A stretch of DNA of 64,000 nt from Auanema rhodensis (lineage: Eukaryota; Animalia; Nematoda): contig OZ059898.1 in NCBI GenBank assembly GCA_964057225.1, forward strand, positions 5,828,001 through 5,892,000. The letters run 5' to 3'. The translations under genes were made by a program, and so were the position numbers. Positions 16,008 to 44,480 of the stretch are shown in pieces; positions within the stretch are counted from its first letter, which is position 1, and each line of letters starts with the position of its first letter. The notes beneath the pieces were generated by a model. It had not been told where the DNA came from and searched no databases. It worked only from the letters and a program-made list of their open reading frames with translations.

Positions 16008-16019
16008 GCCGATGCACCA
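16008..16019 (-). other. Primer-binding site complementary to the 3' end of tRNA-Gly(GCC)
   Basis: Minus strand TGGTGCATCGGC, 3 nt after the 5' LTR; complementary to ...GCCGATGCACCA. Confidence 0.85.
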
Positions 16020-16022
16020 ATT

Positions 16023-16270: not shown

Positions 16271-16310
<40 letters not shown>

Positions 16311-16375
16311 AGGAAAGACAAATAAAACAATTGTTGAAGATAAAATTTATACAAACTCACTCGCTTATCGCGACA
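16023..16375 (-). repeat. 5' LTR of the BEL/Pao element
   Basis: 353 bp; no differences from 6621-6973 seen by eye; followed on the minus strand by the PBS. Confidence 0.96.
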
Positions 16376-19300: not shown

Positions 19301-22300
19301 ACCACTACACCACGAGATCGCTGATAGTTCTCTTTTCATAGAAAATCATATTCTGATTAGCTTATGTTTATGACACCAAAATGTTCCGTCAAGAACAGAA
19401 AAATATGACTTCTGATACCTCTGATAAGAGAGAAAATCATATTCTTAATGACTTGTAGCTCTGTTACTTCACTGTAAGTAAAAAAAACTAAAACATATGA
19501 TCTCGGGCGGGCTCGAACCGCCGGCCTTCTGTGTGTTAGACAGATGTGATAACCACTACACCACGAGATCGCTGATAGTTCTCTTTTCATAGAAAATCAT
19601 ATTCTGATTAGCTTATGTTTATGACACCAAAATGTTCCGTCAAGAACAGAAAAATATGACTTCTGATACCTCTGATATGAGAGAAAATCATATTCTTAAT
19701 GACTTGTAGCTCTAATACTTCACTGTAAGTAAGAAAAACTAAAACATATGATCTCGGGCGGGCTCGAACCGCCGGCCTTCTGTGTGTTAGACAGATGTGA
19801 TAACCACTACACCACGAGATCCCTGATAGCTCTATTTTCATAGAAAATCATATGCTGATTAGCCTATGGTTATGACACAAAAATATTCTGTCAAGAACTG
19901 AAAGATATGACTTCTGATACCTCTGATATGAGAGAAAATCATATTCTTAATGACTTTTAGCTCTGTTACTTCACTGTAAGTAAAAAAAACTAAAACATAT
20001 GATCTCGGGCGGGCTCGAACCGCCGGCCTTCTGTGTGTTAGACAGATGTGATAACCACTACACCACGAGATCGCTGATAGTTCTCTTTTCATAGAAAATC
20101 ATATTCTGATTAGCTTATGTTTATGACACCAAAATGTTCCGTCAAGAACAGAAAAATATGACTTCTGATACCTCTGATAAGAGAGAAAATCATATTCTTA
20201 ATGACTTGTAGCTCTGTTACTTCACTGTAAGTAAAAAAAACTAAAACATATGATCTCGGGCGGGCTCGAACCGCCGGCCTTCTGTGTGTTAGACAGATGT
20301 GATAACCACTACACCACGAGATCCCTGATAGCTCTATTTTCATAGAAAATCATATGCTGATTAGCCTATGGTTATGACACAAAAATATTCTGTCAAGAAC
20401 TGAAAGATATGACTTCTGATACCTCTGATATGAGAGAAAATCATATTCTTAATGACTTGTAGCTCTGTTACTTCACTGTAAGTAAAAAAAACTAAAACAT
20501 ATGATCTCGGGCGGGCTCGAACCGCCGGCCTTCTGTGTGTTAGACAGATGTGATAACCACTACACCACGAGATCGCTGATAGTTGTCTTTTCATAGAAAA
20601 TCATATTCTGATTAGCTTATGTTTATGACACCAAAATGTTCCGTCAAGAACAGAAAAATATGACTTCTGATACCTCTGATAAGAGAGAAAATCATATTCT
20701 TAATGACTTGTAGCTCTGTTACTTCACTGTAAGTAAAAAAAACTAAAACATATGATCTCGGGCGGGCTCGAACCGCCGGCCTTCTGTGTGTTAGACAGAT
20801 GTGATAACCACTACACCACGAGATCCCTGATAGCTCTATTTTCATAGAAAATCATATGCTGATTAGCCTATGGTTATGACACAAAAATATTCTGTCAAGA
20901 ACTGAAAGATATGACTTCTGATACCTCTGATATGAGAGAAAATCATATTCTTAATGACTTGTAGCTCTGTTACTTCACTGTAAGTAAAAAAAACTAAAAC
21001 ATATGATCTCGGGCGGGCTCGAACCGCCGGCCTTCTGTGTGTTAGACAGATGTGATAACCACTACACCACGAGATCGCTGATAGTTGTCTTTTCATAGAA
21101 AATCATATTCTGATTAGCTTATGTTTATGACACCAAAATGTTCCGTCAAGAACAGAAAAATATGACTTCTGATACCTCTGATAAGAGAGAAAATCATATT
21201 CTTAATGACTTGTAGCTCTGTTACTTCACTGTAAGTAAAAAAAACTAAAACATATGATCTCGGGCGGGCTCGAACCGCCGGCCTTCTGTGTGTTAGACAG
21301 ATGTGATAACCACTACACCACGAGATCGCTGTTAGCTCTATTTTCATAGAAAATCATATTCTGATTAGCTTATGTTTATGACACAAAAATGTTCGGTCAA
21401 GAACTGAAAAATATGACTTCTGATACCTTTGATAAGAGAGAACATCATATTCTTAATGACTTGTAGCTCTAATACTTCACTGTAAGTAAGAAAAACTAAA
21501 ACATATGATCTCGGGCGGGCTCGAACCGCCGGCCTTCTGTGTGTTAGATAGATGTGATAACCACTACACCACGAGATCGCTGATAGCCATCTTTTCATAG
21601 AAAATCATATTCTGATTAGCTTATGGTTATGACACAAAAATGTTCGGTCAAGAACTGAAAAATATGACTTCTGATACCTTTGATAAGAGAGAACATCATA
21701 TTCTTAATGACTTGTAGCTCTAATACTTCACTGTAAGTAAGAAAAACTAAAACATATGATCTCGGGCGGGCTCGAACCGCCGGCCTTCTGTGTGTTAGAC
21801 AGATGTGATAACCACTACACCACGAGATCGCTGTTAGCTCTATTTTCATAGAAAATCATATTCTGATTAGCTTATGTTTATGACACAAAAATGTTCGGTC
21901 AAGAACTGAAAAATATGACTTCTGATACCTTTGATAAGAGAGAACATCATATTCTTAATGACTTGTAGCTCTAATACTTCACTGTAAGTAAGAAAAACTA
22001 AAACATATGATCTCGGGCGGGCTCGAACCGCCGGCCTTCTGTGTGTTAGACAGATGTGATAACCACTACACCACGAGATCCCTGATAGCTCTATTTTCAT
22101 AGAAAATCATATGCTGATTAGCCTATGGTTATGACACAAAAATATTCTGTCAAGAACTGAAAGATATGACTTCTGATACCTCTGATATGAGAGAAAATCA
22201 TATTCTTAATGACTTTTAGCTCTGTTACTTCACTGTAAGTAAAAAAAACTAAAACATATGATCTCGGGCGGGCTCGAACCGCCGGCCTTCTGTGTGTTAG

Positions 22301-25300
22301 ACAGATGTGATAACCACTACACCACGAGATCGCTGATAGTTCTCTTTTCATAGAAAATCATATTCTGATTAGCTTATGTTTATGACACCAAAATGTTCCG
22401 TCAAGAACAGAAAAATATGACTTCTGATACCTCTGATAAGAGAGAAAATCATATTCTTAATGACTTGTAGCTCTGTTACTTCACTGTAAGTAAAAAAAAC
22501 TAAAACATATGATCTCGGGCGGGCTCGAACCGCCGGCCTTCTGTGTGTTAGACAGATGTGATAACCACTACACCACGAGATCCCTGATAGCTCTATTTTC
22601 ATAGAAAATCATATGCTGATTAGCCTATGGTTATGACACAAAAATATTCTGTCAAGAACTGAAAGATATGACTTCTGATACCTCTGATATGAGAGAAAAT
22701 CATATTCTTAATGACTTGTAGCTCTGTTACTTCACTGTAAGTAAAAAAAACTAAAACATATGATCTCGGGCGGGCTCGAACCGCCGGCCTTCTGTGTGTT
22801 AGACAGATGTGATAACCACTACACCACGAGATCGCTGATAGTTGTCTTTTCATAGAAAATCATATTCTGATTAGCTTATGTTTATGACACCAAAATGTTC
22901 CGTCAAGAACAGAAAAATATGACTTCTGATACCTCTGATAAGAGAGAAAATCATATTCTTAATGACTTGTAGCTCTGTTACTTCACTGTAAGTAAAAAAA
23001 ACTAAAACATATGATCTCGGGCGGGCTCGAACCGCCGGCCTTCTGTGTGTTAGACAGATGTGATAACCACTACACCACGAGATCGCTGTTAGCTCTATTT
23101 TCATAGAAAATCATATTCTGATTAGCTTATGTTTATGACACAAAAATGTTCGGTCAAGAACTGAAAAATATGACTTCTGATACCTTTGATAAGAGAGAAC
23201 ATCATATTCTTAATGACTTGTAGCTCTAATACTTCACTGTAAGTAAGAAAAACTAAAACATATGATCTCGGGCGGGGTCGAACCGCCGGCCTTCTGTGTG
23301 TTAGACAGATGTGATAACCACTACACCACGAGATCGCTGTTAGCTCTATTTTCATAGAAAATCATATTCTGATTAGCTTATGTTTATGACACAAAAATGT
23401 TCGGTCAAGAACTGAAAAATATGACTTCTGATACCTTTGATAAGAGAGAACATCATATTCTTAATGACTTGTAGCTCTAATACTTCACTGTAAGTAAGAA
23501 AAACTAAAACATATGATCTCGGGCGGGCTCGAACCGCCGGCCTTCTGTGTGTTAGACAGATGTGATAACCACTACACCACGAGATCGCTGATACATCTCT
23601 TATCATACGAAATCATATTCTGATTAGCTTATGGTTATGACACAAAAATGTTCGGTCAAGAACTGAAAAATATGATTTCTGATACTTCTGATATGGGAGA
23701 AAATCAAATTCTTATTGACTTGTAGCTCTGATACTTCACTGTAAGTAAGAAAAACTAAAACATATGATCTCGGGCGGGCTCGAACCGCCGGCCTTCTGTG
23801 TGTTAGACAGATGTGATAACCACTACACCACGAGATCGCTGGTAGTTCTCTTTTCATAGAAAATCATATTCTGATTAGCTTATGTTTATGACACCAAAAT
23901 GTTCCGTCAAGAACAGAAAAATATGACTTCTGATACCTCTGATATGAGAGAAAATCATATTCTTAATGACTTGTAGCTCTGTTACTTCACTGTAAGTAAA
24001 AAAAACTAAAACATATGATCTCGGGCGGGCTCGAACCGCCGGCCTTCTGTGTGTTAGACAGATGTGATAACCACTACACCACGAGATCGCTGATAGTTCT
24101 CTTTTCATAGAAAATCATATTCTGATTAGCTTATGTTTATGACACCAAAATGTTCCGTCAAGAACAGAAAAATATGACTTCTGATACCTCTGATAAGAGA
24201 GAAAATCATATTCTTAATGACTTGTAGCTCTGTTACTTCACTGTAAGTAAAAAAAACTAAAACATATGATCTCGGGCGGGCTCGAACCGCCGGCCTTCTG
24301 TGTGTTAGACAGATGTGATAACCACTACACCACGAGATCGCTGTTAGCTCTATTTTCATAGAAAATCATATTCTGATTAGCTTATGTTTATGACACAAAA
24401 ATGTTCGGTCAAGAACTGAAAAATATGACTTCTGATACCTTTGATAAGAGAGAACATCATATTCTTAATGACTTGTAGCTCTAATACTTCACTGTAAGTA
24501 AGAAAAACTAAAACATATGATCTCGGGCGGGCTCGAACCGCCGGCCTTCTGTGTGTTAGACAGATGTGATAACCACTACACCACGAGATCGCTGATACAT
24601 CTCTTATCATACGAAATCATATTCTGATTAGCTTATGGTTATGACACAAAAATGTTCGGTCAAGAACTGAAAAATATGATTTCTGATACTTCTGATATGG
24701 GAGAAAATCAAATTCTTATTGACTTGTAGCTCTGATACTTCACTGTAAGTAAGAAAAACTAAAACATATGATCTCGGGCGGGCTCGAACCGCCGGCCTTC
24801 TGTGTGTTAGACAGATGTGATAACCACTACACCACGAGATCGCTGGTAGTTCTCTTTTCATAGAAAATCATATTCTGATTAGCTTATGTTTATGACACCA
24901 AAATGTTCCGTCAAGAACAGAAAAATATGACTTCTGATACCTCTGATATGAGAGAAAATCATATTCTTAATGACTTGTAGCTCTGTTACTTCACTGTAAG
25001 TAAAAAAAACTAAAACATATGATCTCGGGCGGGCTCGAACCGCCGGCCTTCTGTGTGTTAGACAGATGTGATAACCACTACACCACGAGATCGCTGATAG
25101 TTCTCTTTTCATAGAAAATCATATTCTGATTAGCTTATGTTTATGACACCAAAATGTTCCGTCAAGAACAGAAAAATATGACTTCTGATACCTCTGATAA
25201 GAGAGAAAATCATATTCTTAATGACTTGTAGCTCTGTTACTTCACTGTAAGTAAAAAAAACTAAAACATATGATCTCGGGCGGGCTCGAACCGCCGGCCT

Positions 25301-27648
25301 TCTGTGTGTTAGACAGATGTGATAACCACTACACCACGAGATCGCTGATAGTTCTCTTTTCATAGAAAATCATATTCTGATTAGCTTATGTTTATGACAC
25401 CAAAATGTTCCGTCAAGAACAGAAAAATATGACTTCTGATACCTCTGATAAGAGAGAAAATCATATTCTTAATGACTTGTAGCTCTGTTACTTCACTGTA
25501 AGTAAAAAAAACTAAAACATATGATCTCGGGCGGGCTCGAACCGCCGGCCTTCTGTGTGTTAGACAGATGTGATAACCACTACACCACGAGATCGCTGAT
25601 AGTTCTCTTTTCATAGAAAATCATATTCTGATTAGCTTATGTTTATGACACCAAAATGTTCCGTCAAGAACAGAAAAATATGACTTCTGATACCTCTGAT
25701 AAGAGAGAAAATCATATTCTTAATGACTTGTAGCTCTGTTACTTCACTGTAAGTAAAAAAAACTAAAACATATGATCTCGGGCGGGCTCGAACCGCCGGC
25801 CTTCTGTGTGTTAGACAGATGTGATAACCACTACACCACGAGATCGCTGATAGTTCTCTTTTCATAGAAAATCATATTCTGATTAGCTTATGTTTATGAC
25901 ACCAAAATGTTCCGTCAAGAACAGAAAAATATGACTTCTGATACCTCTGATAAGAGAGAAAATCATATTCTTAATGACTTGTAGCTCTGTTACTTCACTG
26001 TAAGTAAAAAAAACTAAAACATATGATCTCGGGCGGGCTCGAACCGCCGGCCTTCTGTGTGTTAGACAGATGTGATAACCACTACACCACGATATCGCTG
26101 ATACTTCTCTTCTCATACGAAATCATATTCTGATTAGCTTATGGTTATGACACAAAAATGTTCGGTCAAGAACTGAAAAATATGATTTCTGATACTTCTG
26201 ATATGGGAGAAAATCAAATTCTTATTGACTTGTAGCTCTGATACTTCACTGTAAGTAAGAAAAACTAAAACATATGATCTCGGGCGGGCTCGAACCGCCG
26301 GCCTTCTGTGTGTTAGACAGATGTGATAACCACTACACCACGAGATCGCTGGTAGTTCTCTTTTCATAGAAAATCATATTCTGATTAGCTTATGTTTATG
26401 ACACCAAAATGTTCGGTCAAGAACTGAAAAATATGACTTCTGATACCTCTGATAAGAGAGAACATCATATTCTTAATGACTTGTAGCTCTGATACTTCAC
26501 TGTAAGTAAGAAAAACTAAAACATATGATCTCGGGCGGGCTCGAACCGCCGGCCTTCTGTGTGTTAGACAGATGTGATAACCACTACACCACGAGATCGC
26601 TGATAGCTATCTTTTCATAGAAAATCATATTCTGATTAGCTTACGGTTATAACACAAAAATGTTCGGTCAAGAACTGAAAAATATGACTTCTGATACCTC
26701 TGATAAGAGAGAACATCATATTCTTAATGACTTGTAGCTCTGATACTTCACTGTAAGTAAGAAAAACTAAAACATATGATCTCGGGCGGGCTCGAACCGC
26801 CGGCCTTCTGTGTGTTAGACAGATGTGATAACCACTACACCACGAGATCGCTGATAGTTCTCTTTTCATAGAAAATCATATTCTGATTAGCTTATGTTTA
26901 TGACACCAAAATGTTCCGTCAAGAACGGAAAAATATGACTTCTGTTACTTCTGATATGAGAGAAAATCATATTCTTAATGACTTGTAGCTCTAATACTTC
27001 ACTGTAAGTAAAAAAAACTAAAACATATGATCTCGGGCGGGCTCGAACCGCCGGCCTTCTGTGTGTTAGACAGATGTGATAACCACTACACCACGAGATC
27101 ACTGTTAGCTCTATTTTCATAGAAAATCATATTCTGATTAGCTTATGTTTATGACACAAAAATGTTCGGTCAAGAACTGAAAAATATGACTTCTGATACC
27201 TTTGATAAGAGAGAACATCATATTCTTAATGACTTGTAGCTCTAATACTTCACTGTAAGTAAGAAAAACTAAAACATATGATCTCGGGCGGGCTCGAACC
27301 GCCGGCCTTCTGTGTGTTAGATAGATGTGATAACCACTACACCACGAGATCGCTGATAGCCATCTTTTCATAGAAAATCATATTCTGATTAGCTTATGGT
27401 TATGACACAAAAATGTTCCGTCAAGAACTGAAAAACATGACTTCTGATACCTCTGATAAGAGAGAAAATCATATTTTTAATGACTTGTAGCTCTGATACT
27501 TCACTGTGAGTAAGAAAAACTAAAACATATGATCTCGGGCGGGCTCGAACCGCCGGCCTTCTGTGTGTTAGACAGATGTGATAACCACTACACCACGAGA
27601 TCGCTGTTAGCTATCTTTTCATAGAAAATCATATTCTGATTAGCTTAT
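16376..27648 (-). repeat. tRNA-Val(AAC) tandem array, block 2 (about 45 copies)
   Basis: Same 251-bp unit, resuming in register after the TSD. Confidence 0.98.
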
Positions 27649-27919
27649 CGTTCCGTTATGCTCCTGCGTCGATAATATAAACCATTGTAGTTTATACTAA
27701 AGATTTATTGGCATGAAACTACAACAATAATATACAAAGATAAAGATACAATACAATAAGATAAATATAAGTATAAAGACTAAACTACAAGCCGTCCATG
27801 AGCTTGCTAAGAGGCGAACTCCCGACCAAGGGAACGAGGGAAGGCGGAGCCATTCCTCGGTCCTCTGGTCGTCCGGCTCTAACCCTTCAGCTGCATTTAT
27901 GGGGAGTCCGAATGGAACG
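27649..27919 (-). repeat. 3' LTR of the CG-ended element
   Basis: 271 bp; minus-strand AATAAA at 27704-27709; preceded on the minus strand by a weak purine tract GAAAAGGTCA. Confidence 0.9.
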
Positions 27920-30778
27920 TGACCTTTTCAAAGATTTTTCGCGTCCGCGCGATATAAAGAGTTTTTAGTGTATATGTAGCTGAGTTTTAGAGTATAGGAG
28001 TTTACAAAAAAAATTCAAAAGTTTTAAAATCTACATGTAGAAAGATATTTAAATAGTTTTAATAGGTTTCTTTATGGTATTAAGATAGAATTTAAATACA
28101 ATAATAGGTTTTATGTTATTTTGTAACGGAGGATTAGAAAATAAATTTAGTCATTGCAGTGCTGTAATAAAAATATTTCTTTGTTTCATGAATGTGTGAT
28201 TTATGTGAGATAATAAGGAATTATTCAACTTTTTGCGTATATGGTTACTCGTATCCTAATGAATGGGGATAAAGATTTTTAGTTAATAATTTTTTTCGTC
28301 TTCATGTGTCTCTCTGAATGAATCCTTGAGTACTAATGGAGGCTACCACTCAGATGGGGTGTGGCTTAGGCGCCTGCCAATGTTCGTCTCTTCTTGGAGA
28401 TACATATGGAGCTCAGTTTAGCGCAAAATAATATCTCTATCGGTCGTATAGGGTTACGGTAGCCATTTATTTCTATTATATTTTTGCTTGTTCCTTATTT
28501 TTGTTTGTTTACTTCCTTAATCTCTCATCAAAAATTTTCTAATTCACCGTTACTTTCATTTTACAATTTACAGAAAAGAAAAGAATGTATATAAAGTTTT
28601 TTCTGTCGTCGGCTATGATGAAGTCCGGATCTTCGTCGGTGTCGTCAGAAGGTGAATATGTGCCTTCTCGGGGAGTATAGAATTTGTCGACTTGCGGCTT
28701 CGGCTTCTCGTCTGGTTGGTGCGGTTTTTCTATTTGAACACTGAGAAGTCGGGTACGGCTTCCGGTACGACTTGCGACAGTAGCGTCACTGTTGATATCG
28801 GACGGGTAAAGGGCTCGGAAAGCCGATGAGAATCTTTTGGCCACCTTTGTAGGACTTTTGGTTTGGAAAAACCGAGAATGGTGAGCTACGTGTGGGATGT
28901 TGACGCAAGGTGCGTTAGATTCTTTTAGATGTGTGTTGGGAGAGAGAAAGATTCGGGAGCAATAGGATAGTCATGCTTTGCTGGGCGATGCGGAGGGTAA
29001 ATGAGAGGGAGTTTTTCAAATCCTGGCCAGGAATCTGACTCCGCCTATCTACCGTAAGCTTATTATAGTTAATGATGTTTATCTCTTCGCAAAAACTATT
29101 TTTATCCGCTCTTGCACTTTCCTCTAATTTTGTTTTCTTACTGCTCTAGAATCTTTAAAAAAAACTTTATTCATGTCGTCCCCTTTGTACTTTTGCGGCC
29201 TTTGGACATTTATTTTAAGGTTAGAAACAAAAGAAAAGAAAAGATAGAAAGAAAAAAATGGATTTCCAACGTTATAATCCCACTGGCATGACTTAAGTCC
29301 TGTGGAAATTATACGAATCCATCGTTGAGTACGATGGAGAAGGAGTTTTGGCTTATAGGCTAAATCTTGATATAATTTTAATGGTTCGTGTATCTCCATT
29401 TTATGTTTGATTATTTGATTACTTTAGTTTATCGAAGATCTTCAAATGTATTATTTGGGGCAGGGCCATATAAACTTTGCCACCTTCGTAGATGTAGCTC
29501 CCGAAGTGGAGCTTGTTGGTCGGAGGTGCTTAGTTGATCTATGCGCTCATATATATAATGGTAGGGCCGGTTTATTAACCGCACGTCCTTGGGCCTGGTA
29601 CCAGGAAAAGAGTCATTTTTATTATTATTTTTTATATAGATTATTGTTTAAAATCTATATTGTTTATGATGACTCATTATTTGGTTTGGAACTTAGGGTT
29701 TCGCGAGGTTTAGAATATAGTGAAGATTTAATTGCGAGCGAAACTCCTATGTTTCTTGCCTCTGAGTTTCGAACTCGGTTGCAAATCAAATACGGGTATT
29801 GACTGAACAAAGCTTGTACTCTGTGTTTTTTTTTTGTGCACTTTGCACTGTTTTCGTCAAGAAAATGGCCTTATGTGTTTTTCAATCTTGTCCTCATTCC
29901 TTTTTCCTTAAATAGCATGTTTTGCTCAAAATGTTTTCGACATTGTGCATGCTAATGAGGTTCGAGGAGAGTTATTGAAAAGGCTGTCCCTTTTCTTGAT
30001 CAAAATAAGCAAAAGTGCGTTTTCCTAAGCGAATTTCTTTTTGAAAATGAGAAAAATACGTCTATTTTTGAACATTTCCAAATAACTTAGGATTACTGTA
30101 GGAGATAAGGGGTATCTTATGAGTTGAAACAACGAAATGATTTGAGGAAAGTGACATAATCTACGGGGATAAAATCCGTAGCAGTTATGCTTCCGCCAAC
30201 TTGACCTGACTGTCAATTAAGAGCTGAGAAGTCTTATTGCAGGTTTACCAGGCTTTTTCGGACTAGTGTGGTCTCTTTTTATATTCAATTTATGTAACCG
30301 TTTTTGGTTTCCCGCAAAATAATATGTTAAATGGTCTTTTACGTCTGAATATAATAATATTTCAAAATTCTAGTCCTGACCACAAAATATACAAACTATA
30401 ATCAATTGCGCGCGTCTTATAAATTTTTGTTCCAATAATCAAACTTCTCTATGCCCAAAAAAAATGTGAACAACTATAATTTCTCGTTTGGCGAAATTGT
30501 CCTCTATTTCAATCCAAACGTCCTCAAAATAGCATGAGAAGCAGTACAAGATACGATAAAGAAAAGGGTGGACATTCAGACGGTTTTAAATTGAGGACGG
30601 CGGGCAAAAACTTTTATTGGTCCTATCTCGCATTTAAGCGAGATTCCTTGTATCTGTACCTTTAAACAAATTGGCGCCTTCATTTTGTTGTTTCAAGTGG
30701 AGGATTTATAATTTAGAATGCAAAAATGGACTTTTACAATAAAAAAAAAATTTTTTTTTGTTCAAAAGATGAGTTCGA

Positions 30779-30791
30779 GGTGGAACCTCCA
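30779..30791 (-). other. Primer-binding site complementary to the 3' end of tRNA-Gln
   Basis: Minus strand TGGAGGTTCCACC directly abutting the 5' LTR; complementary to ...GGTGGAACCTCCA. Confidence 0.85.
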
Positions 30792-31062
30792 CGTTCCGTT
30801 ATGCTCCTGCGTCGATAATATAAACCATTGTAGTTTATACTAAAGATTTATTGGCATGAAACTACAACAATAATATACAAAGATAAAGATACAATAAAAT
30901 AAGATTAATATAAGTATAAAGACTAAACTACAAGCCGTCCATGAGCTTGCTAAGAGGCGAACTCCCGACCAAGGGAACGAGGGAAGGCGGAGCCATTCCT
31001 CGTTCCTCTGGTCGTCTGGCTCTAACCCTTCAGCTACATTTATGGGGAGTCCGAATGGAACG
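30792..31062 (-). repeat. 5' LTR of the CG-ended element
   Basis: 271 bp; five substitutions versus 27649-27919 counted by eye. Confidence 0.9.
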
Positions 31063-34000
31063 TTATGTTTATGACACAAAAAATGTTCGGTCAAGAACTG
31101 AAAAATATGACTACTGATACCTGTGATATAAAAGAAAGTCATATTCTTAATGACTTGTAGCTCTAATACTTCACTGTAAGTAATAAAAACTAAAACATAT
31201 GATCTCGGGCGGGCTCGAACCGCCGGCCTTCTGTGTGTTAGACAGATGTGATAACCACTACACCACGAGATCGCTGTTAGCTCTCTTTTCATAGAAACTC
31301 ATATTCTGATTAGCTTATGGTTATGTCACAAAAATATTCCGTCAAGAACTGAAAAATATGACTACTGATACCTCTGATATAAAAGAAAGTCATATTCTTA
31401 ATGACTTGTAGCTCTAATACTTCACTGTAAGTAATAAAAACCAAAACATATGATCTCGGGCGGGCTCGAACCGCCGGCCTTCTGTGTGTTAGACAGATGT
31501 GATAACCACTACACCACGAGATCGCTGTTAGCTCTCTTTTCATAGAAAATCATATTCTGATTAGCTTATGGTTATGTCACAAAAATATTCCGTCAAGAAC
31601 TGAAAAATATGACTACTGATACCTCTGATCTGAGAGAAAATCATATTCTTAATGACTTGTAGCTCTGATACTTCACTGTAAGTAATAAAAACTAAAACAT
31701 ATGATCTCGGGCGGGCTCGAACCGCCGGCCTTCTGTGTGTTAGACAGATGTGATAACCACTACACCACGAGATCGCTGTTAGCTCTCTTTTCATAGAAAA
31801 TCATATTCTGATTAGCTTATGGTTATGACACAAAAATGTTGGGTCAAGAACTGAAAAATATGACTACTGATACCTCTGATATGAGAGAAAATCATATTCT
31901 TAATGACTTGTAGCTCTGATACTTCACTGTAAGTAATAAAAACTAAAACATATGATCTCGGGCGGGCTCGAACCGCCGGCCTTCTGTGTGTTAGACAGAT
32001 GTGATAACCACTACACCACGAGATCGCTGTTAGCTCTCTTTTCATAGAAAATCATATTCTGATTAGCTTATGGTTATGTCACAAAAATATTCCGTCAAGA
32101 ACTGAAAAATATGACTACTGATACCTCTGATATAAAAGAAAGTCATATTCTTAATGACTTGTAGCTCTAATACTTCACTGTAAGTAATAAAAACTAAAAC
32201 ATATGATCTCGGGCGGGCTCGAACCGCCGGCCTTCTGTGTGTTAGACAGATGTGATAACCACTACACCACGAGATCGCTGTTAGCTCTCTTTTCATAGAA
32301 AATCATATTCTGATTAGCTTATGGTTATGTCACAAAAATATTCCGTCAAGAACTGAAAAATATGACTACTGATACCTCTGATATAAAAGAAAGTCATATT
32401 CTTAATGACTTGTAGCTCTAATACTTCACTGTAAGTAATAAAAACTAAAACATATGATCTCGGGCGGGCTCGAACCGCCGGCCTTCTGTGTGTTAGACAG
32501 ATGTGATAACCACTACACCACGAGATCGCTGTTAGCTCTCTTTTCATAGAAAATCATATTCTGATTAGCTTATGGTTATGTCACAAAAATATTCCGTCAA
32601 GAACTGAAAAATATGACTACTGATACCTCTGATATAAAAGAAAGTCATATTCTTAATGACTTGTAGCTCTAATACTTCACTGTAAGTAATAAAAACTAAA
32701 ACATATGATCTCGGGCGGGCTCGAACCGCCGGCCTTCTGTGTGTTAGACAGATGTGATAACCACTACACCACGAGATCGCTGTTAGCTCTCTTTTCATAG
32801 AAAATCATATTCTGATTAGCTTATGGTTATGACACAAAAATGTTGGGTCAAGAACTGAAAAATATGACTACTGATACCTCTGATATGAGAGAAAATCATA
32901 TTCTTAATGACTTGTAGCTCTGATACTTCACTGTAAGTAATAAAAACTAAAACATATGATCTCGGGCGGGCTCGAACCGCCGGCCTTCTGTGTGTTAGAC
33001 AGATGTGATAACCACTACACCACGAGATCGCTGTTAGCTCTCTTTTCATAGAAAATCATATTCTGATTAGCTTATGGTTATGACACAAAAATGTTGGGTC
33101 AAGAACTGAAAAATATGACTACTGATACCTAAAAACTAAAAATATGACTACTGATACCTCTGATATAAAAGAAAGTCATATTCTTAATGACTTGTAGCTC
33201 TAATACTTCACTGTAAGTAATAAAAACTAAAACATATGATCTCGGGCGGGCTCGAACCGCCGGCCTTCTGTGTGTTAGACAGATGTGATAACCACTACAC
33301 CACGAGATCGCTGTTAGCTCTCTTTTCATAGAAAATCATATTCTGATTAGCTTATGGTTATGTCACAAAAATATTCCGTCAAGAACTGAAAAATATGACT
33401 ACTGATACCTCTGATCTGAGAGAAAATCATATTCTTAATGACTTGTAGCTCTAATACTTTTCTGTAAGTAAGAAAAACTAAAACATATGATCTCGGGCGG
33501 GCTCGAACCGCCGGCCTTCTGTGTGTTAGACAGATGTGATAACCACTACACCACGAGATCGCTGCTAGCTCTCTTTTCATAGAAAATCATATTCTGATTA
33601 GCTTATGGTTATGACACAAAAATGTTGGGTCAAGAACTGAAAAATATGACTACTGATACCTCTGATATGAGAGAAAATCATATTCTTAATGACTTGTAGC
33701 TCTGATACTTCACTGTAAGTAATAAAAACTAAAACATATGATCTCGGGCGGGCTCGAACCGCCGGCCTTCTGTGTGTTAGACAGATGTGATAACCACTAC
33801 ACCACGAGATCGCTGTTAGCTCTCTTTTCATAGAAAATCATATTCTGATTAGCTTATGGTTATGACACAAAAATGTTCCGTCAAGAATTGAAAAATATGA
33901 CTACTGATACCTCTGATATGAGAGAAAATCATATTCTTAATGACTTGTAGCTCTAATACTTCACTGTAAGTAAGAAAAACTAAAACATATGATCTCGTGC

Positions 34001-37000
34001 GGGCTCGAACCGCCGGCCTTCTGTGTGTTAGACAGATGTGATAACCACTACACCACGAGATCGCTGTTAGCTCTCTTTTCATAGAAAATCATATTCTGAT
34101 TAGCTTATGGTTATGACACAAAAATGTTCCGTCAAGAATTGAAAAATATGACTACTGATACCTCTGATATGAGAGAAAATCATATTCTTAATGACTTGTA
34201 GCTCTGATACTTCACTGTAAGTAATAAAAACTAAAACATATGATCTCGGGCGGGCTCGAACCGCCGGCCTTCTGTGTGTTAGACAGATGTGATAACCACT
34301 ACACCACGAGATCGCTGTTAGCTCTCTTTTCATAGAGAATCATATTCTGATTAGCTTATGGTTGTGACATAAAAATGTTCCCTCAAGAACTGAAAAATAT
34401 GACTTCTGATACCTCTGATATGAGAGAAAATCATATTCTTAATGACTTGTAGCTGTAATACTTCACTGTAAGTAATAAAAACTAAAACATATGATCTCGG
34501 GCGGGCTCGAACCGCCGGCCTTCTGTGTGTTAGACAGATGTGATAACCACTACACCACGAGATCGCTGTTAGCTCTCTTTTCATAGAGAATCATATTCTG
34601 ATTAGCTTATGGTTGTGACATAAAAATGTTCCGTCAAGAATTGAAAAATATGACTACTGATACCTCTGATATGAGAGAAAATCATATTCTTAATGACTTG
34701 TAGCTCTGATACTTCACTGTAAGTAATAAAAACTAAAACATATGATCTCGGGCGGGCTCGAACCGCCGGCCTTCTGTGTGTTAGACAGATGTGATAACCA
34801 CTACACCACGAGATCGCTGTTAGCTCTCTTTTCATAGAGAATCATATTCTGATTAGCTTATGGTTGTGACATAAAAATGTTCCCTCAAGAACTGAAAAAT
34901 ATGACTTCTGATACCTCTGATATGAGAGAAAATCATATTCTTAATGACTTGTAGCTGTAATACTTCACTGTAAGTAAGAAAAACTAAAACATATGATCTC
35001 GGGCGGGCTCGAACCGCCGGCCTTCTGTGTGTTAGACAGATGTGATAACCACTACACCACGAGATCGCTGTTAGCTCTCTTTTCATAGAAAATCATATTC
35101 TGATTAGCTTATGGTTATGACACAAAAATGTTCCGTCAAGAACTGAAAAATATGACTATTGATACCTCTGATATGAGAGAAAATCATATTCTTAATGACT
35201 TGTAGCTCTGATACTTCACTGTAAGTAATAAAAACTAAAACATATGATCTCGGGCGGGCTCGAACCGCCGGCCTTCTGTGTGTTAGACAGATGTGATAAC
35301 CACTACACCACGAGATCGCTGTTAGCTCTCTTTTCATAGAAAATCATATTCTGATTAGCTTATGGTTATGACACAAAAATGTTCCGTCAAGAACAGAAAA
35401 ATATGACTTCTGATACCTCTGATATGAGAGAAAATCATATTCTTAATGACTTGTAGCTCTAATACTTCACTGTAAGTAAGAAAAACTAAAACATATGATC
35501 TCGGGCGGGCTCGAACCGCCGGCCTTCTGTGTGTTAGACAGATGTGATAACCACTACACCACGAGATCGCTGTTAGCTCTCTTTTCATAGAGAATCATAT
35601 TCTGATTAGCTTATGTTTATGACACCAAAATGTTCCGTCAAGAACAGAAAAATATGACTTCTGATACCTCTGATATGAGAGAAAATCATATTCTTAATGA
35701 CTTGTAGCTCTAATACTTCACTGTAAGTAAAAAAAACTAAAACATATGATCTCGGGCGGGCTCGAACCGCCGGCCTTCTGTGTGTTAGACAGATGTGATA
35801 ACCACTACACCACGAGATCGCTGATAGTTCTCTTTTCATAGAAAATCATATTCTGATTAGCTTATGTTTATGACACCAAAATGTTCCGTCAAGAACAGAA
35901 AAATATGACTTCTGATACCTCTGATAAGAGAGAAAATCATATTCTTAATGACTTGTAGCTCTAATACTTCACTGTAAGTAAGAAAAACTAAAACATATGA
36001 TCTCGGGCGGGCTCGAACCGCCGGCCTTCTGTGTGTTAGACAGATGTGATAACCACTACACCACGAGATCGCTGATAGTTCTCTTTTCATAGAAAATCAT
36101 ATTCTGATTAGCTTATGTTTATGACACCAAAATGTTCCGTCAAGAACAGAAAAATATGACTTCTGATACCTCTGATAAGAGAGAAAATCATATTCTTAAT
36201 GACTTGTAGCTCTAATACTTCACTGTAAGTAAAAAAAACTAAAACATATGATCTCGGGCGGGCTCGAACCGCCGGCCTTCTGTGTGTTAGACAGATGTGA
36301 TAACCACTACACCACGAGATCGCTGATAGTTCTCTTTTCATAGAAAATCATATTCTGATTAGCTTATGGTTGTGACACAAAAATGTTCCGTCAAGAACTG
36401 AAAAATATGACTTCTGATACCTCTGATATGAGAGAAAATCATATTCTTAATGACTTGTAGCTCTAATACTTCACTGTAAGTAAGAAAAACTAAAACATAT
36501 GATCTCGGGCGGGCTCGAACCGCCGGCCTTCTGTGTGTTAGACAGATGTGATAACCACTACACCACGAGATCGCTGTTAGCTCTCTTTTCATAGAAAATC
36601 ATATTCTGATTAGCTTATGGTTGTGACACAAAAATGTTCCGTCAAGAACTGAAAAATATGACTTCTGATACCTCTGATATGAGAGAAAATCATATTCTTA
36701 ATGACTTGTAGCTCTAATACTTCACTGTAAGTAAGAAAAACTAAAACATATGATCTCGGGCGGGCTCGAACCGCCGGCCTTCTGTGTGTTAGACAGATGT
36801 GATAACCACTACACCACGAGATCGCTGTTAGCTCTCTTTTCATAGAAAATCATATTCTGATTAGCTTATGGTTATGACACAAAAATGTTCCCTCAAGAAC
36901 TGAAAAATATGACTTCTGTTACTTCTGATATGAGAGAAAATCATATTCTTAATGACTTGTAGCTCTAATACTTCACTGTAAGTAAGAAAAACTAAAACAT

Positions 37001-40000
37001 ATGATCTCGGGCGGGCTCGAACCGCCGGCCTTCTGTGTGTTAGACAGATGTGATAACCACTACACCACGAGATCGCTGTTTGCTCTCTTTTCATAGAAAA
37101 TCATATTCTGATTAGCTTATGGTTATGACACAAAAATGTTCCCTCAAGAACTGAAAAATATGACTTCTGTTACTTCTGATATGAGAGAAAATCATATTCT
37201 TAATGACTTGTAGCTCTGATACTTCACTGTAAGTAAGAAAAACTAAAACATATGATCTCGGGCGGGCTCGAACCGCCGGCCTTCTGTGTGTTAGACAGAT
37301 GTGATAACCACTACACCACGAGATCGCTGTTTTCTCTCTTTTCATAGAAAATCATATTCTGATTAGCTTATGGTTGTGACACAAAAATGTTCCGTCAAGA
37401 ACGGAAAAATATGACTTCTGTTACTTCTGATATGAGAAAATCATATTCTTAATGACTTGTAGCTCTAATACTTCACTGTAAGTAAGAAAAACTAAAACAT
37501 ATGATCTCGGGCGGGCTCGAACCGCCGGCCTTCTGTGTGTTAGACAGATGTGATAACCACTACACCACGAGATCGCTGTTTGCTCTCTTTTCATAGAAAA
37601 TCATATTCTGATTAGCTTTTGGTTGTGACACAAAAATGTTCCGTCAAGAACGGAAAAATATGACTTCTGTTACTTCTGATATGAGAGAAAATCATATTCT
37701 TAATGACTTGTAGCTCTAATACTTCACTGTAAGTAAGAAAAACTAAAACATATGATCTCGGGCGGGCTCGAACCGCCGGCCTTCTGTGTGTTAGACAGAT
37801 GTGATAACCACTACACCACGAGATCGCTGTTAGCTCTCTTTTCATAGAAAATCATATTCTGATTAGCTTATGGTTATGACACAAAAATGTTCCCTCAAGA
37901 ACTGAAAAATATGACTACTGATACCTCTGATATGAGAGAAAATCATACCGCCGGCCTTCTGTGTGTTAGACAGATGTGATAACCACTACACCACGAGATC
38001 GCTGTTAGCTCTCTTTTCATAGAAAATCATATTCTGATTAGCTTATGGTTATGACACAAAAATGTTGGGTCAAGAACAGAAAAATATGACTTCTGATACC
38101 TCTGATATGAGAGAAAATCATATTCTTAATGACTTGTAGCTCTGATACTTCACTGTAAGTAATAAAAACTAAAACATATGATCTCGGGCGGGCTCGAACC
38201 GCCGGCCTTCTGTGTGTTAGACAGATGTGATAACCACTACACCACGAGATCGCTGTTAGCTCTCTTTTCATAGAAAATCATATTCTGATTAGCTTATGGT
38301 TATGACACAAAAATGTTCCCTCAAGAACTGAAAAATATGACTTCTGTTACTTCTGATATGAGAGAAAATCATATTCTTAATGACTTGTAGCTCTGATACT
38401 TCACTGTAAGTAAGAAAAACTAAAACATATGATCTCGGGCGGGCTCGAACCGCCGGCCTTCTGTGTGTTAGACAGATGTGATAACCACTACACCACGAGA
38501 TCGCTGTTAGCTCTCTTTTCATAGAAAATCATATTCTGATTAGCTTATGGTTATGACACAAAAATGTTCCCTCAAGAACTGAAAAATATGACTTCTGTTA
38601 CTTCTGATATGAGAGAAAATCATATTCTTAATGACTTGTAGCTCTAATACTTCACTGTAAGTAAGAAAAACTAAAACATATGATCTCGGGCGGGCTCGAA
38701 CCGCCGGCCTTCTGTGTGTTAGACAGATGTGATAACCACTACACCACGAGATCGCTGTTAGCTCTCTTTTCATAGAAAATCATATTCTGATTAGCTTATG
38801 GTTATGACACAAAAATGTTCCCTCAAGAACTGAAAAATATGACTTCTGATACCTCTGATATGAGAGAAAATCATATTCTTAATGACTTGTAGCTCTAATA
38901 CTTTTCTGTAAGTAAGAAAAACTAAAACATATGATCTCGGGCGGGCTCGAACCGCCGGCCTTCTGTGTGTTAGACAGATGTGATAACCACTACACCACGA
39001 GATCGCTGTTAGCTCTCTTTTCATAGAAAATCATATTCTGATTAGCTTATGGTTATGACACAAAAATGTTCCGTCAAGTACTGAAAAATATGACTTCTGA
39101 TACCTCTGATATGAGAGAAAATCATATTCTTAATGACTTGTAGCTCTAATACTTCACTGTAAGTAAGAAAAACTAAAACATATGATCTCGGGCGGGCTCG
39201 AACCGCCGGCCTTCTGTGTGTTAGACAGATGTGATAACCACTACACCACGAGATCGCTGTTTGCTCTCTTTTCATAGAAAATCATATTCTGATTAGCTTA
39301 TGGTTATGACACAAAAATGTTCCGTCAAGAACTGAAAAATATGACTTCTGATACCTCTGATATGAGAGAAAATCATATTCTTAATGACTTGTAGCTCTAA
39401 TACTTCACTGTAAGTAAGAAAAACTAAAACATATGATCTCGGGCGGGCTCGAACCGCCGGCCTTCTGTGTGTTAGACAGATGTGATAACCACTACACCAC
39501 GAGATCGCTGATAGTTCTCTTTTCATAGAAAATCATATTCTGATTAGTTTATGTTTATGACACCAAAATGTTCCGTCAAGAACAGAAAAATATGACTTCT
39601 GATACCTCTGATATGAGAGAAAATCATATTCTTAATGACTTGTAGCTCTAATACTTCACTGTAAGTAAGAAAAACTAAAACATATGATCTCGGGCGGGCT
39701 CGAACCGCCGGCCTTCTGTGTGTTAGACAGATGTGATAACCACTACACCACGAGATCGCCGTTAGCTCTCTTTTCATAGAAAATCATATTCTGATTAGCT
39801 TATGGTTATGACACAAAAATGTTCCGTCAAGAACTGAAAAATATAACTACCGATACCTCTGATCTGAGAGAAAATCATATTCTTAATGACTTGTAGCTCT
39901 AATACTTTTCTGTAAGTAAGAAAAACTAAAACATATGATCTCGGGCGGGCTCGAACCGCCGGCCTTCTGTGTGTTAGACAGATGTGATAACCACTACACC

Positions 40001-42418
40001 ACGAGATCGCTGTTTGCTCTCTTTTCATAGAAAATCATATTCTGATTAGCTTATGGTTGTGACACAAAAATGTTCCGTCAAGAACTGAAAAATATGACTA
40101 CTGATACCTCTGATATGAGAGAAAATCATATTCTTAATGACTTGTAGCTCTAATACTTCACTGTAAGTAAGAAAAACTAAAACATATGATCTCGGGCGGG
40201 CTCGAACCGCCGGCCTTCTGTGTGTTAGACAGATGTGATAACCACTACACCACGAGATCGCTGTTTGCTCTCTTTTCATAGAAAATCATATTCTGATTAG
40301 CTTATGGTTGTGACACAAAAATGTTCCGTCAAGAACTGAAAAATATGACTACTGATACCTCTGATATGAGAGAAAATCATATTCTTAATGACTTGTAGCT
40401 CTAATACTTTTCTGTAAGTAAGAAAAACTAAAACATATGATCTCGGGCGGGCTCGAACCGCCGGCCTTCTGTGTGTTAGACAGATGTGATAACCACTACA
40501 CCACGAGATCGCCGTTAGCTCTCTTTTCATAGAAAATCATATTCTGATTAGCTTATGGTTATGACACAAAAATGTTCCGTCAAGAACTGAAAAATATGAC
40601 TACTGATACCTCTGATATGAGAGAAAATCATATTCTTAATGACTTGTAGCTCTAATACTTCACTGTAAGTAAGAAAAACTAAAACATATGATCTCGGGCG
40701 GGCTCGAACCGCCGGCCTTCTGTGTGTTAGACAGATGTGATAACCACTACACCACGAGATCGCCGTTAGCTCTCTTTTCATAGAAAATCATATTCTGATT
40801 AGCTTATGGTTATGACACAAAAATGTTCCGTCAAGAACTGAAAAATATGACTACTGATACCTCTGATATGAGAGAAAATCATATTCTTAATGACTTGTAG
40901 CTCTGATACTTCACTGTAAGTAATAAAAACTAAAACATATGATCTCGGGCGGGCTCGAACCGCCGGCCTTCTGTGTGTTAGACAGATGTGATAACCACTA
41001 CACCACGAGATCGCTGTTTGCTCTCTTTTCATAGAAAATCATATTCTGATTAGCTTATGGTTGTGACACAAAAATGTTCCGTCAAGAACTGAAAAATATG
41101 ACTTCTGTTACTTCTGATATGAGAGAAAATCATATTCTTAATGACTTGTAGCTCTAATACTTCACTGTAAGTAAGAAAAACTAAAACATATGATCTCGGG
41201 CGGGCTCGAACCGCCGGCCTTCTGTGTGTTAGACAGATGTGATAACCACTACACCACGAGATCGCTGATTTCTCTCTTTTCATAGAAAATCATATTCTGA
41301 TTAGCTTATGGTTGTGACACAAAAATGTTCCGTCAAGAACGGAAAAATATGACTTCTGTTACTTCTGATATGAGAGAAAATCATATTCTTAATGACTTGT
41401 AGCTCTAATACTTCACTGTAAGTAAGAAAAACTAAAACATATGATCTCGGGCGGGCTCGAACCGCCGGCCTTCTGTGTGTTAGACAGATGTGATAACCAC
41501 TACACCACGAGATCGCTGTTTGCTCTCTTTTCATAGAAAATCATATTCTGATTAGCTTTTGGTTGTGACACAAAAATGTTCCGTCAAGAACGGAAAAATA
41601 TGACTTCTGTTACTTCTGATATGAGAGAAAATCATATTCTTAATGACTTGTAGCTCTAATACTTCACTGTAAGTAAGAAAAACTAAAACATATGATCTCG
41701 GGCGGGCTCGAACCGCCGGCCTTCTGTGTGTTAGACAGATGTGATAACCACTACACCACGAGATCGCTGTTTGCTCTCTTTTCATAGAAAATCATATTCT
41801 GATTAGCTTTTGGTTGTGACACAAAAATGTTCCGTCAAGAACGGAAAAATATGACTTCTGTTACTTCTGATATGAGAGAAAATCATATTCTTAATGACTT
41901 GTAGCTCTAATACTTCACTGTAAGTAAGAAAAACTAAAACATATGATCTCGTGCGGGCTCGAACCGCCGGCCTTCTGTGTGTTAGACAGATGTGATAACC
42001 ACTACACCACGAGATCGCTGTTAGCTCTCTTTTCATAGAGAATCATATTCTGATTAGCTTATGTTTATGACACCAAAATGTTCCGTCAAGAACAGAAAAA
42101 TATGACTTCTGATACCTCTGATATGAGAGAAAATCATATTCTTAATGACTTGTAGCTCTAATACTTCACTGTAAGTAAGAAAAACTAAAACATATGATCT
42201 CGGGCGGGCTCGAACCGCCGGCCTTCTGTGTGTTAGACAGATGTGATAACCACTACACCACGAGATCGCTGTTTGCTCTCTTTTCATAGAAAATCATATT
42301 CTGATTAGCTTTTGGTTGTGACACAAAAATGTTCCGTCAAGAACGGAAAAATATGACTTCTGTTACTTCTGATATGAGAGAAAATCATATTCTTAATGAC
42401 TTGTAGCTCTAATACTTT
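31063..42418 (-). repeat. tRNA-Val(AAC) tandem array, block 3 (about 44 full copies and 1 deleted copy); right end of the array
   Basis: Same unit; last full tRNA at 42195-42267; the array stops mid-spacer at about 42418. Confidence 0.97.
37947..38000 (-). pseudogene. 3'-truncated tRNA-Val copy
   Basis: A 76-bp deletion joins spacer AATCATA to CCGCCGGCC, removing most of the T loop/B-box, the 3' acceptor strand and the terminator (unit length 175). Confidence 0.9.
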
Positions 42419-42466
42419 GTACTACGTTGTAATTGTTTTATTTTGATTTTTATTTTAAATTTCCAG

Positions 42467-44480
42467 AGTGTCGTATGTGGTTTAATTGTTACTTCCTTTT
42501 CTGGTATATCTGCTGATATTCGTTCGTTACGATTAGTTTTCAATACACAGCCATGCGATGGGGTATAATATCAAATGATTAAAGCTAATGGTGACTTTAA
42601 TTTCAGTTTATTCGTCTATCGTCATTAACCCTTGCTCTAATAGTTCCGAATTGCAATCATGGGTTTCTCATGGCTGCTGTTGTTGCTCTTCTTTCGGTAG
42701 TTTATCGTATCAAATCGTAACAGACTTGAATAAATGTTCTAATAAGATGATGTGTTTTCAGAATTCCATGTGAGGTTCTAGTGAAAGTTGCCGAAAATTT
42801 TTACGTGGAAGAAAGCAGGCAAGAAATTAGTTTCATTATATAATGCTCAATTTTATTTTTCATTGTTATAATCATCTTTTTTGCAGGTACAACGATGGGG
42901 ATTGCCTAGATACACCAGTACGGATAATCAAAGTGACTGGACCATTGCTGTTTTTAAACATTGAAGACACTCGTAAGGAAATTTATCTCCAAGTGGTTAC
43001 AGTTAAAGGGTCAGTACAAGTTTATTTCTTTAATTAATAAGTCCAAAATAATTGTTTGAAGAAATTTGAGGTGCATGGAAAAGTTCATACTATAATTCAT
43101 ACGATAGCTAATGATTTATTATTTCGGTGTTCCTAATTCAATCAACATTTTTCATTTCATGTCAGATTATCTGCTTTACATATATCTTTTGAAATTTGCT
43201 TCTTGTCATTAGAATGATAATGATGATAGTAGCTGACGACATACATCGTTGTCGTTCGCCTTTTACATGATAATCCAGTTCATAGAATAGTGTTTAGGAA
43301 ATTGTCAACAAAAACGCCTTAAAAATTGCGAAGTAACAAACGAAACTGAAATATAGTAGATAGGATTGCGGAAAGCATCATTAATTTGTGTAATCATTGA
43401 TTCTAAATCTCAGAAACCAGAGAACATAATCATCTAAAACAGAAAATATTTGTTTAATATCAAATGTTGTTTCAGCTTAATTGGAATCGGTATCGGATCT
43501 CGAACAGTAAGCTTGCGTAGTACAAATGGTCCAATGGTTATTGCGAATCGTGAAAGTATCGATAAAAGAAGTAGTACCAACCTAACGAATATTGTGATAA
43601 CTCATGAAGTAGATCTTAATCAAGTACATACTTTTTCTGTTTTGATAATCATAGATTATTATTTGTTTAAGAGTCAGATGCTTGGTTCTGATCAAAATAT
43701 ACCTCGTTTCATCGTACTAGATTGCTCAGGCTTATCAGCAATTGATACGGAAGCTATGCAAATGCTCTCCCAGGTTTTTCAAAGTTACTCATTTTCTACA
43801 ACTTAAATTTGTATTATTAGGTTTATTTTGATCTAAGCAATGATCATATACGTCTTATGTTTGCCGGAATGTCCGGTAAGTTCAAATCGTTACCTACTAT
43901 ATCTTTCCCTGATTTCACTGAACATCTTTATCGTATTATTCATCGATTTTAAGTCTGTTTACGGTGTCTGAATCTGTTTAATTAGTCTAGAACTTAGCTC
44001 AATTTATACAAATTACATCAATCTTATTGTATATTGAAACTCGTAAATCTAAACGACTTGACTATAGTGAAACAGTCCATAAAGAGTCATAAGCTGAGAA
44101 CGCTGAGCGTTTATAGCCAACTAACAAACCGTTTTTACGCGTTTTTATGTCTAGCCCTTGTCTTTATTTCGAAACATTTTATTCTTAAGAACTATGCATT
44201 TTCAGCTCGAATTCGTGACGATCTTGAAAGTAGTACATTCCATACTAGAGTACCTTTATCGTCATTTTATCCTACAGTTACTGAAGCACTAGTTGCAGCA
44301 CGAAGTATAGCTTTACCATTTCATATGAGGTAATATTGAACACGGGGGATACAAGAGAAAATTGTTAAAACTCCATTTTTTAGTGTTTCTATGAATGGAT
44401 ATAGAGATGTGATTGCTCTCTCAACTGCGGCGTCTAATCAGGATATCAGCATAGCTCATCAATCGGCTGAAGCAGTTTGA
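42467..44480 (+). CDS. SLC26/SulP anion transporter (sulp family), 3' exons only: last TM helices and STAS domain
   Basis: Exons from 42467-42562, 42607-42716, 42762-42818, 42887 onward join in frame: ...GFLMAAVVALLSVVYRIKS...VRIIKVTGPLLFLNIE...RFIVLDCSGLSAIDTEAMQML...FYPTVTEAL...SAEAV*. First visible exon has a TTCCAG acceptor and no ATG. Confidence 0.85.

Follow-up and report, generated by a model that had tools for sequence, protein, structure and literature searches.

Does a tandem array of transfer RNA (tRNA) genes in the nematode Auanema rhodensis lie inside an intron of a gene that encodes a protein, and can such a gene still be in use? This question is raised by a stretch of 64,000 nucleotides, the window, of contig OZ059898.1 of assembly GCA_964057225.1 (C6:5828001-5892000). 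In the window, an array of tRNA-Val(AAC) genes is followed by the last exons of an SLC26/sulp anion-transporter gene. The first-pass annotation of this DNA had offered three readings: an array inside a giant intron, a gene truncated by the array, or a junction that marks a rearrangement or elimination boundary. In this study, the window and the 100 kb to its left (164 kb) were examined. Our results showed that the array makes up most of intron 11 of a 20-exon, 706-codon SLC26/sulp gene. This structure, together with an origin of the array in place and a probable continued use of the gene, is very likely to be the correct explanation of the locus as a whole.

One transporter gene on both sides of the array

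The host gene is on the plus strand and runs from an ATG at C6:5767253 to the TGA stop of exon 20 (Table 1). Exons 1-11, including the ATG, are found on the same strand at C6:5767253-5769141, directly beyond the far (left) end of the array, and exons 12-20 (window 42467-44480) are in a single consistent frame through to the TGA. According to the exon/phase table, the coding sequence has 2,121 nucleotides, that is, 706 codons plus the stop, and no internal stops. The lengths of 18 of the 19 introns ranged from 41 to 466 bp and intron 11 measured 101,325 bp (C6:5769142 to window 42466). Every one of the 19 introns ends in AG, and all but one start with GT; the exception, intron 14, starts with GC. 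Two introns of 45 and 48 bp, which preserve the reading frame, were placed with the help of the ortholog from Auanema sp. JU1783. Intron 11 starts with the donor GTAAGC after a complete codon (phase 0) and ends with the acceptor TTTCCAG, whose AG is at window 42465-42466, and exon 12 also opens with a complete codon (phase 0). With GT-AG ends, matching phases and flanking exons that are contiguous in the homolog, intron 11 is predicted to be a spliceosomal intron.

The JU1783 ortholog was found with one 93-residue exon, whose search against 1.84 billion proteins returned a single match, a 704-amino-acid "unnamed protein product" of Auanema sp. JU1783 (E = 1.1e-14). Pfam scans of the host gene were made exon by exon, and this ortholog served as the full-length stand-in for family assignment. 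It possesses a Sulfate_transp domain (PF00916, residues 77-439, 112.9 bits against a cut-off of 23.2) and a STAS domain (residues 503-659, 50.5 bits), and it matches the structures of prestin, SLC26A6 and pendrin with E-values down to 3.7e-32. All 20 exons of the host gene align to it, and the overall identity is 76-80%. Both the membrane domain and the STAS domain are found via the ortholog, and on these sequence matches the host gene is assigned to the SLC26/SulP family.

When the 164 kb were searched with the ortholog by tblastn, residues 1-402 matched only at C6:5767253-5769138, a region 59-61 kb left of where the window starts. Residues 403-704 matched at C6:5870464-5872477 (E = 7e-41, 4e-39 and 2e-29). 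The E-values ranged overall from 2e-59 to 2e-29, and zero residues were missing between the left and right blocks. The first-pass annotation had reported neither an ATG nor N-terminal exons in the window and had suggested that the 5' exons might be beyond the far end of the array. Both points were borne out, as eleven plus-strand exons with the ATG were located there, first with pieces of paralogs and then with the JU1783 ortholog; residues 402 and 403 straddle the array, in phase 0 on each side. Truncation of the gene by the array is excluded, because both gene halves are present and in frame. The exons in the window align to ortholog residues 403-704, and exons 12-13 encode the last transmembrane part, because Sulfate_transp of the ortholog ends at residue 439 and STAS starts at residue 503. 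This agrees with the late transmembrane helices proposed previously, as do the nine intact downstream exons in one frame to the stop at 44480, in which the only non-GT donor is the GC at 42819.

Other searches of the gene were less sensitive. The local tblastn search with exon-sized pieces of paralogs gave three weak but colinear plus-strand matches at C6:5767728-5769022, adjoining the left of the array. In the exon-by-exon scan, exons 4 and 10 matched PF00916 at hidden Markov model (HMM) positions 29-54 and 279-311, respectively, also weakly but colinearly. A six-frame scan of the whole genome with PF00916 identified 7 other sulp loci, none of them near the window, and missed the upstream half entirely. 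This miss was a false negative, explained by the divergence of the protein and the shortness of its exons. The six-frame genome scan with STAS identified 8 loci, the eighth of which is that of the window (C6:5871555-5871788, 21.8 bits). No second copy of window 42419-44600 was found elsewhere in the genome, and a partial duplication of the 3' half was thus rejected. Protein searches for a full-length, N-terminal or C-terminal version did not turn up any protein of this genome. One of the paralogs, at C5:14182720-14187357, has 550 uninterrupted codons, unlike the other many-exon paralogs, and may be intron-poor or retro-copied.

A frameshift or pseudogene had been suspected after the exon that starts at 42607. 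This was ruled out by a GTAACA donor at 42717, which forms the same junction in the JU1783 ortholog. All 20 exons were present in a clean frame, and no lost exons, in-frame stops, frameshifts or lost splice sites were found in the host gene.

Anatomy and origin of the array

The array begins at about C6:5769240, and 58.8 kb of it precede the window. ARAGORN identified 298 tRNA-Val(AAC) genes in intron 11, 115 in the window and 183 to its left, all of which are antisense to the host gene. The series in the window runs from 197 to 42267 with a period of 251 bp, interrupted by two large gaps and one small gap. Homology to the repeat unit stops at window 42415-42417 and is followed by 49 unique bases. 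The array end at about 42418 and the acceptor that opens an internal exon at 42467, both given in the first-pass annotation, were therefore placed correctly. Its giant intron of over 42 kb was right in that the array is inside an intron and too small in size, which is 101,325 bp. Similarly, its description of more than 100 antisense RNA polymerase III (Pol III) genes and two retroelements holds for the antisense orientation, and the counts have to be raised to about 300 tRNA genes and five retroelement insertions.

All insertions with a long open reading frame (ORF) are antisense to the host gene. The two insertions of 2,465 bp are identical, and each is within a segment of about 5 kb that is repeated 10,838 bp apart, which points to a recent unequal exchange. 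The copies of this segment, at C6:5804654-5809664 and 5815492-5820502, differ by about 5 mismatches, and either very recent unequal exchange or a local duplication in the assembly might account for them. The 7.7-kb retrotransposon is inserted upstream of a tRNA-Val gene, at a distance of only 4 bases from its 5' end, which resembles the Ty3-like targeting of Pol III starts; for the other insertions in the array, the corresponding distances to a tRNA gene are 46, 76 and 175 bases.

The orthologous intron, whose comparison had been proposed as a check, was found in JU1783 at the same codon boundary (...FIPK | SVICG...) and in the same phase. The JU1783 sulp gene spans only 3.7 kb and this intron only 190 bp, which contains exactly one minus-strand tRNA-Val(AAC) gene, 27 bases past the donor. 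Because the JU1783 intron holds one antisense tRNA-Val(AAC) at the same position, the array is considered with high confidence to have arisen in place from a nested tRNA gene. In the related locus of Diploscapter pachys, the gene is found without the tRNA gene, so that the nesting cannot be dated beyond Auanema.

The composition of the repeat units is informative about the first duplication. The unit spacer of 178 bp runs into both unique flanks of intron 11. Each unit-unit junction joins 3'-flank sequence (...TAGCTCTAATACTT...TGTA) to 5'-flank sequence (...AAAAACTAAAA...), and TAGCTCTAA occurs at either end of the array. A junction composed of both flanks and a sequence shared by both ends suggest a first duplication in place between short similar sequences. 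In a search of the genome with the spacer, one of six candidates was scored, which is the array of intron 11, and further sites may exist. The ancestral intron would have been a few hundred bases long with one nested antisense tRNA-Val gene, a state kept in JU1783. A segment of 251 bp around the tRNA gene would have been duplicated in place between short similar sequences, the array would next have expanded by unequal exchange, and the retroelements would have been inserted afterwards.

These results also bear on whether the array is an artefact of assembly, with a true intron that is small, carries one or few tRNA-Val genes and had an array from elsewhere threaded into it or was inflated. Tandem arrays are hard to assemble, and the 5-kb segment is repeated at about 100% identity. 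However, PacBio HiFi reads, scaffolded by means of Hi-C, underlie what is very probably this assembly (preprint 10.64898/2026.08.27.747507), and the 136 distinct sequences among 263 units are variable enough to anchor long reads. Moreover, the 178-bp spacer continues into the unique flanks of the intron itself, and the 164 kb contain no runs of N. We regard an assembly artefact as highly improbable.

The tRNA genes of the array differ from their spacers in diversity. Among 263 in-register units, nucleotide diversity was 0.056 over the 178 bp of the spacer and 0.003 over the 73 bp of the tRNA gene, and common variants were found in 49 spacer columns vs. 1 tRNA column (Fisher p = 1.4e-7). The internal promoter of the tRNA-Val genes is canonical, with an A box TGGTGTAGTGG and a B box GGTTCGAGCCC, T-runs are found just past the 3' ends, and identical tRNA-Val copies are also dispersed elsewhere in the genome. 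Given the low diversity, the A and B boxes, the T-runs and the dispersed copies, the copies in the array have the appearance of Pol III genes that are maintained, not of an inert satellite.

The neighborhood of the array was compared with JU1783 at the level of translated sequence. On either side of the array, the genes follow the same order in the two species (SET-domain gene, tRNA-Cys gene, sulp gene and then downstream genes with a CAP-domain gene), and the minus-strand tRNA-Cys gene upstream of sulp is common to both species. The downstream genes on the minus strand at window 45305-50993 (the CAP-domain protein and its neighbors) are colinear with those of JU1783, with up to 97% amino-acid identity per exon. 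This colinearity and identity indicate that the neighborhood is ordinary conserved gene-rich DNA.

The germline assembly of A. rhodensis (A. rhodense in the preprint) comprises 180.9 Mb in seven chromosome-scale scaffolds obtained from HiFi and Hi-C data, with 19,554 tRNA loci and tandem blocks of tRNA genes (10.64898/2026.08.27.747507). During programmed elimination, chromosomes of this species are broken and telomeres are added at a palindromic motif of 29 nt. Each autosome has four such sites, which are found at transitions to multi-megabase repeat blocks (10.64898/2026.08.27.747507). About 61% of the germline DNA is eliminated and some tRNA arrays are among the germline-restricted repeats (preprint), so the array edge at 42418 might be a boundary of programmed DNA elimination or of a rearrangement, as the first-pass annotation had also considered. 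A map of C6 from forty 3-kb samples along the contig, however, placed the locus inside the non-repetitive block at 4.0-9.5 Mb, with at least about 1.8 Mb between it and the closest repeat block (Table 1). The satellite at both ends of C6 matches the terminal germline-restricted repeat blocks that are described for the autosomes.

No telomere repeats were found in the 164 kb. A scan for the elimination motif, which used its palindromic form only (the preprint gives the motif sequence in a figure), found no 14-N-14 palindrome with up to 2 mismatches in the 164 kb and none with up to 4 mismatches within 1 kb of either array edge; looser matches were AT-rich noise away from the edges. Moreover, colinearity with the sister species extends to both flanks. 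None of the features of an elimination boundary was thus found at the array edge, and we consider this explanation extremely improbable. With elimination unsupported, the array is, by inference, kept in somatic cells, in which the transporter would have to be expressed.

Table 1. Coordinates of the features of the locus and of C6. Numbers without prefix are positions in the window.
Feature	Coordinates	Strand	Description
Unique 5' flank of intron 11			83 bp
Repeat units of intron 11			75,338 bp
Unique 3' end of intron 11	42418..42466	+	49 bp after unit homology, ends in TTTCCAG
Insertions in intron 11 (n = 5)			7,756; 2,465; 2,465; 9,755; 3,414 bp (25.9 kb)
Array share in the window	1..42417	-	251-bp units, one tRNA-Val(AAC) each; 115 tRNA genes (ARAGORN)
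Last tRNA-Val(AAC) of the array	42195..42267	-	ARAGORN
Site of long terminal repeat (LTR) retrotransposon, 7.7 kb	C6:5780105-5780115, left of the window		414-bp LTRs identical; 1,210-codon ORF
LTR retrotransposon	6621..16375	-	9,755 bp; 353-bp LTRs 100% identical; 2,701-codon ORF; AAGAA target duplication
Non-coding LTR element	27649..31062	.	3,414 bp; 272-bp LTRs with 5 differences (98.2%); no ORF of at least 150 amino acids; TTAT duplication
Exon 12	42467..42562	+	Phase 0 at both ends; ortholog residues 403-435, 70% identity; first exon right of the array
Exon 13	42607..42716	+	Last transmembrane helix; donor GTAACA at 42717; same junction in JU1783 ortholog
Exon 14	42762..42818	+	Precedes GC-AG intron 14
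Intron 14	42819-42886	+	GC-AG, donor CAG/GCAAGA at 42819; GT in JU1783 ortholog
Exon 15	42887..43009	+	Start of STAS domain; 85% amino-acid identity to ortholog
Exon 16	43476..43623	+	STAS variable loop; 88% identity
Exon 17	43672..43773	+	STAS core; Pfam STAS HMM 38-62, 18.9 bits, E = 0.0013
Exon 18	43821..43875	+	From exon/phase table
Exon 19	44206..44329	+	From exon/phase table
Exon 20	44384..44480	+	Ends in TGA stop at 44478-44480
C6 region	0.5-3.5 Mb		351-bp satellite
C6 region	4.0-9.5 Mb		Non-repetitive; contains the window (5.83-5.89 Mb)
C6 region	10-11 Mb		Repeats
C6 region	11.5-16 Mb		Mostly non-repetitive
C6 region	17-21 Mb		351/176-bp satellite

Probable continued use of the host gene

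The host gene is probably still in use, with RNA polymerase II (Pol II) crossing the array and the spliceosome joining exon 11 to exon 12. Compared with the JU1783 ortholog, the proportion of nonsynonymous differences (pN) was 0.12-0.14 and that of synonymous differences (pS), which was saturated, was 0.78-0.88, in both halves of the gene. Relative-rate tests with 4 outgroups revealed no significant lineage-specific excess, all chi-square values being <3.84. No TTTCAG acceptor was found on the sense strand of the array, and no AATAAA was found in one sampled unit (window 41944-42194).

Several observations weigh against continued use. Because the synonymous sites are saturated, the ratio of nonsynonymous to synonymous rates (dN/dS) cannot date the latest constraint. 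On its sense strand, the array has 298 donor-like GTAAGT sites, which may compete with the donor of exon 11. Transcription of the host gene would run head-on into about 300 tRNA genes whose A and B boxes and T-run terminators are intact, and Pol III complexes are known to be roadblocks to Pol II (PMC5358760, PMC5052057). Moreover, the donor of intron 14, which is GT in JU1783, is weakened to GC. Finally, the identical LTRs of two insertions and the 5-kb duplication with about 100% identity show that growth of the array was very recent.

From these observations, the host might be a recently dead gene whose productive expression has already been halted by the expansion of the array, through decoy donors, Pol III roadblocks and sheer length, and whose frame is intact for lack of time. 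The same GTAAGT sites, head-on tRNA genes with intact promoters, identical LTR pairs, near-identical duplication and GC donor would all fit this explanation, and a loss may be tolerable given the 7 other sulp loci in the genome. However, no stop, frameshift or lost splice dinucleotide was found over 2,121 coding bases and 19 introns, and there was no acceleration of rate relative to the ortholog. By a rough estimate, the spacer diversity of 5.6% and the LTR divergence of 1.8% would make the array old enough for several disabling changes. Had the host been neutral for as long as the divergence of the LTRs of the oldest insertion implies (about 0.9% per lineage), several such changes would be expected, and for as long as the divergence of the spacers implies (about 2.8% per lineage), many; no such change was seen, with the caveat that the array may have been far smaller for most of that time. 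Death of the gene is thus possible, although we consider it rather unlikely.

Exons 12-20 might instead be expressed alone as a second transcription unit, for instance from a promoter in the intron and with trans-splicing of a spliced leader at 42467. In nematodes, trans-splicing is common at acceptors that have no paired donor, TTTCCAG is a strong acceptor and exon 13 contains an in-frame ATG. The product would contain little beyond STAS. However, no evidence of an internal sense promoter was found, and the ORF-bearing insertions are all antisense. The exons on both sides of the array are, moreover, under similar constraint, and the ancestral phase is kept. Separate expression of the two halves is therefore improbable.

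If the gene is in use as a single unit, Pol II would read head-on through about 300 Pol III genes and exons 11 and 12 would be joined across 101 kb. A farther-reaching proposal, which we offer tentatively and regard as somewhat doubtful in its entirety, is that the transporter is still expressed while Pol II passes head-on through about 300 Pol III genes maintained by selection and about 300 decoy donors are ignored, that nested tRNA genes are seeds of the tRNA complement of the species (19,554 loci), and that host promoters possibly gate the access of Pol III.

Comparison with nested tRNA genes and giant introns

Nested tRNA genes are common in rhabditids. In C. elegans, they make up 43-44% of the tRNA genes; conservation of their pairing with a host is frequent, and their expression is influenced by the promoters of the hosts (PMC3342880, PMC4999229). 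Similar to the nested tRNA genes of rhabditids, the tRNA-Val genes of this study are intact tRNA genes in a host intron, each gene being whole within the intron, and the pairing and its orientation are conserved in JU1783. The nested tRNA genes of C. elegans, however, are usually found one per intron (PMC3342880), whereas here about 300 tandem copies are found and the intron is about 500-fold larger. In the main text of the A. rhodense preprint, tRNA blocks are described only among the germline-restricted tandem repeats, different from the array here, which is in a gene and in a gene-rich block; that main text does not discuss intronic arrays, and "intron" is found only in its reference list. 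In an earlier short-read annotation of A. rhodensis, the median intron length was 47 bp and the maximum 24,877 bp, and the largest C. elegans intron listed there was 100,912 bp.

Similar to intron 11, the introns of the Drosophila Y fertility genes kl-3 and kl-5 owe their large size to tandem repeats, which Pol II has to transcribe, and there the genes are functional (PMC6508621). The Drosophila introns, however, are megabase-sized, consist of simple satellites and are served by a dedicated spermatocyte program, whereas intron 11 is 0.1 Mb long and its repeat unit is itself an apparently functional Pol III gene. In the Polr3e intron, an antisense unit occupied by Pol III lowers the Pol II output of the host (PMC5358760), and by analogy this is the kind of interaction that is likely to occur here. 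Different from Polr3e, which contains one element of the short interspersed element (SINE) type, intron 11 contains about 300 true tRNA genes. The locus thus combines two known kinds, the nested tRNA gene and repeat-driven intron gigantism; in the literature, no report was found in which in-place amplification had turned a nested tRNA gene into an array that splits a gene.

The two Auanema species provide a clean before-and-after pair for intron gigantism, with 190 bp and one tRNA gene in JU1783 vs. 101 kb and about 300 in A. rhodensis, and an intact frame in both. The pair makes it possible to test whether Pol II is able to traverse hundreds of head-on Pol III genes, how a spliceosome used to short introns handles hundreds of decoy donors and whether intragenic tRNA arrays are active or silenced. 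In addition, in-place amplification of nested genes is pointed to as a concrete origin for part of the expansion of tRNA genes in A. rhodensis. For annotation, genes of this kind will end up split or truncated when gene finders apply ordinary limits on intron length.

The C6 samples contained four further tandem arrays of tRNA genes, at 10.0, 11.0, 14.0 and 16.0 Mb. They consist of Gly(GCC), Leu(CAG) with a period of 317 bp, Gly(UCC) with a period of about 269 bp and Trp(CCA) genes, respectively. One copy in the Trp array has the anticodon TCA, is called "SeC" by ARAGORN and is a possible opal-suppressor variant.

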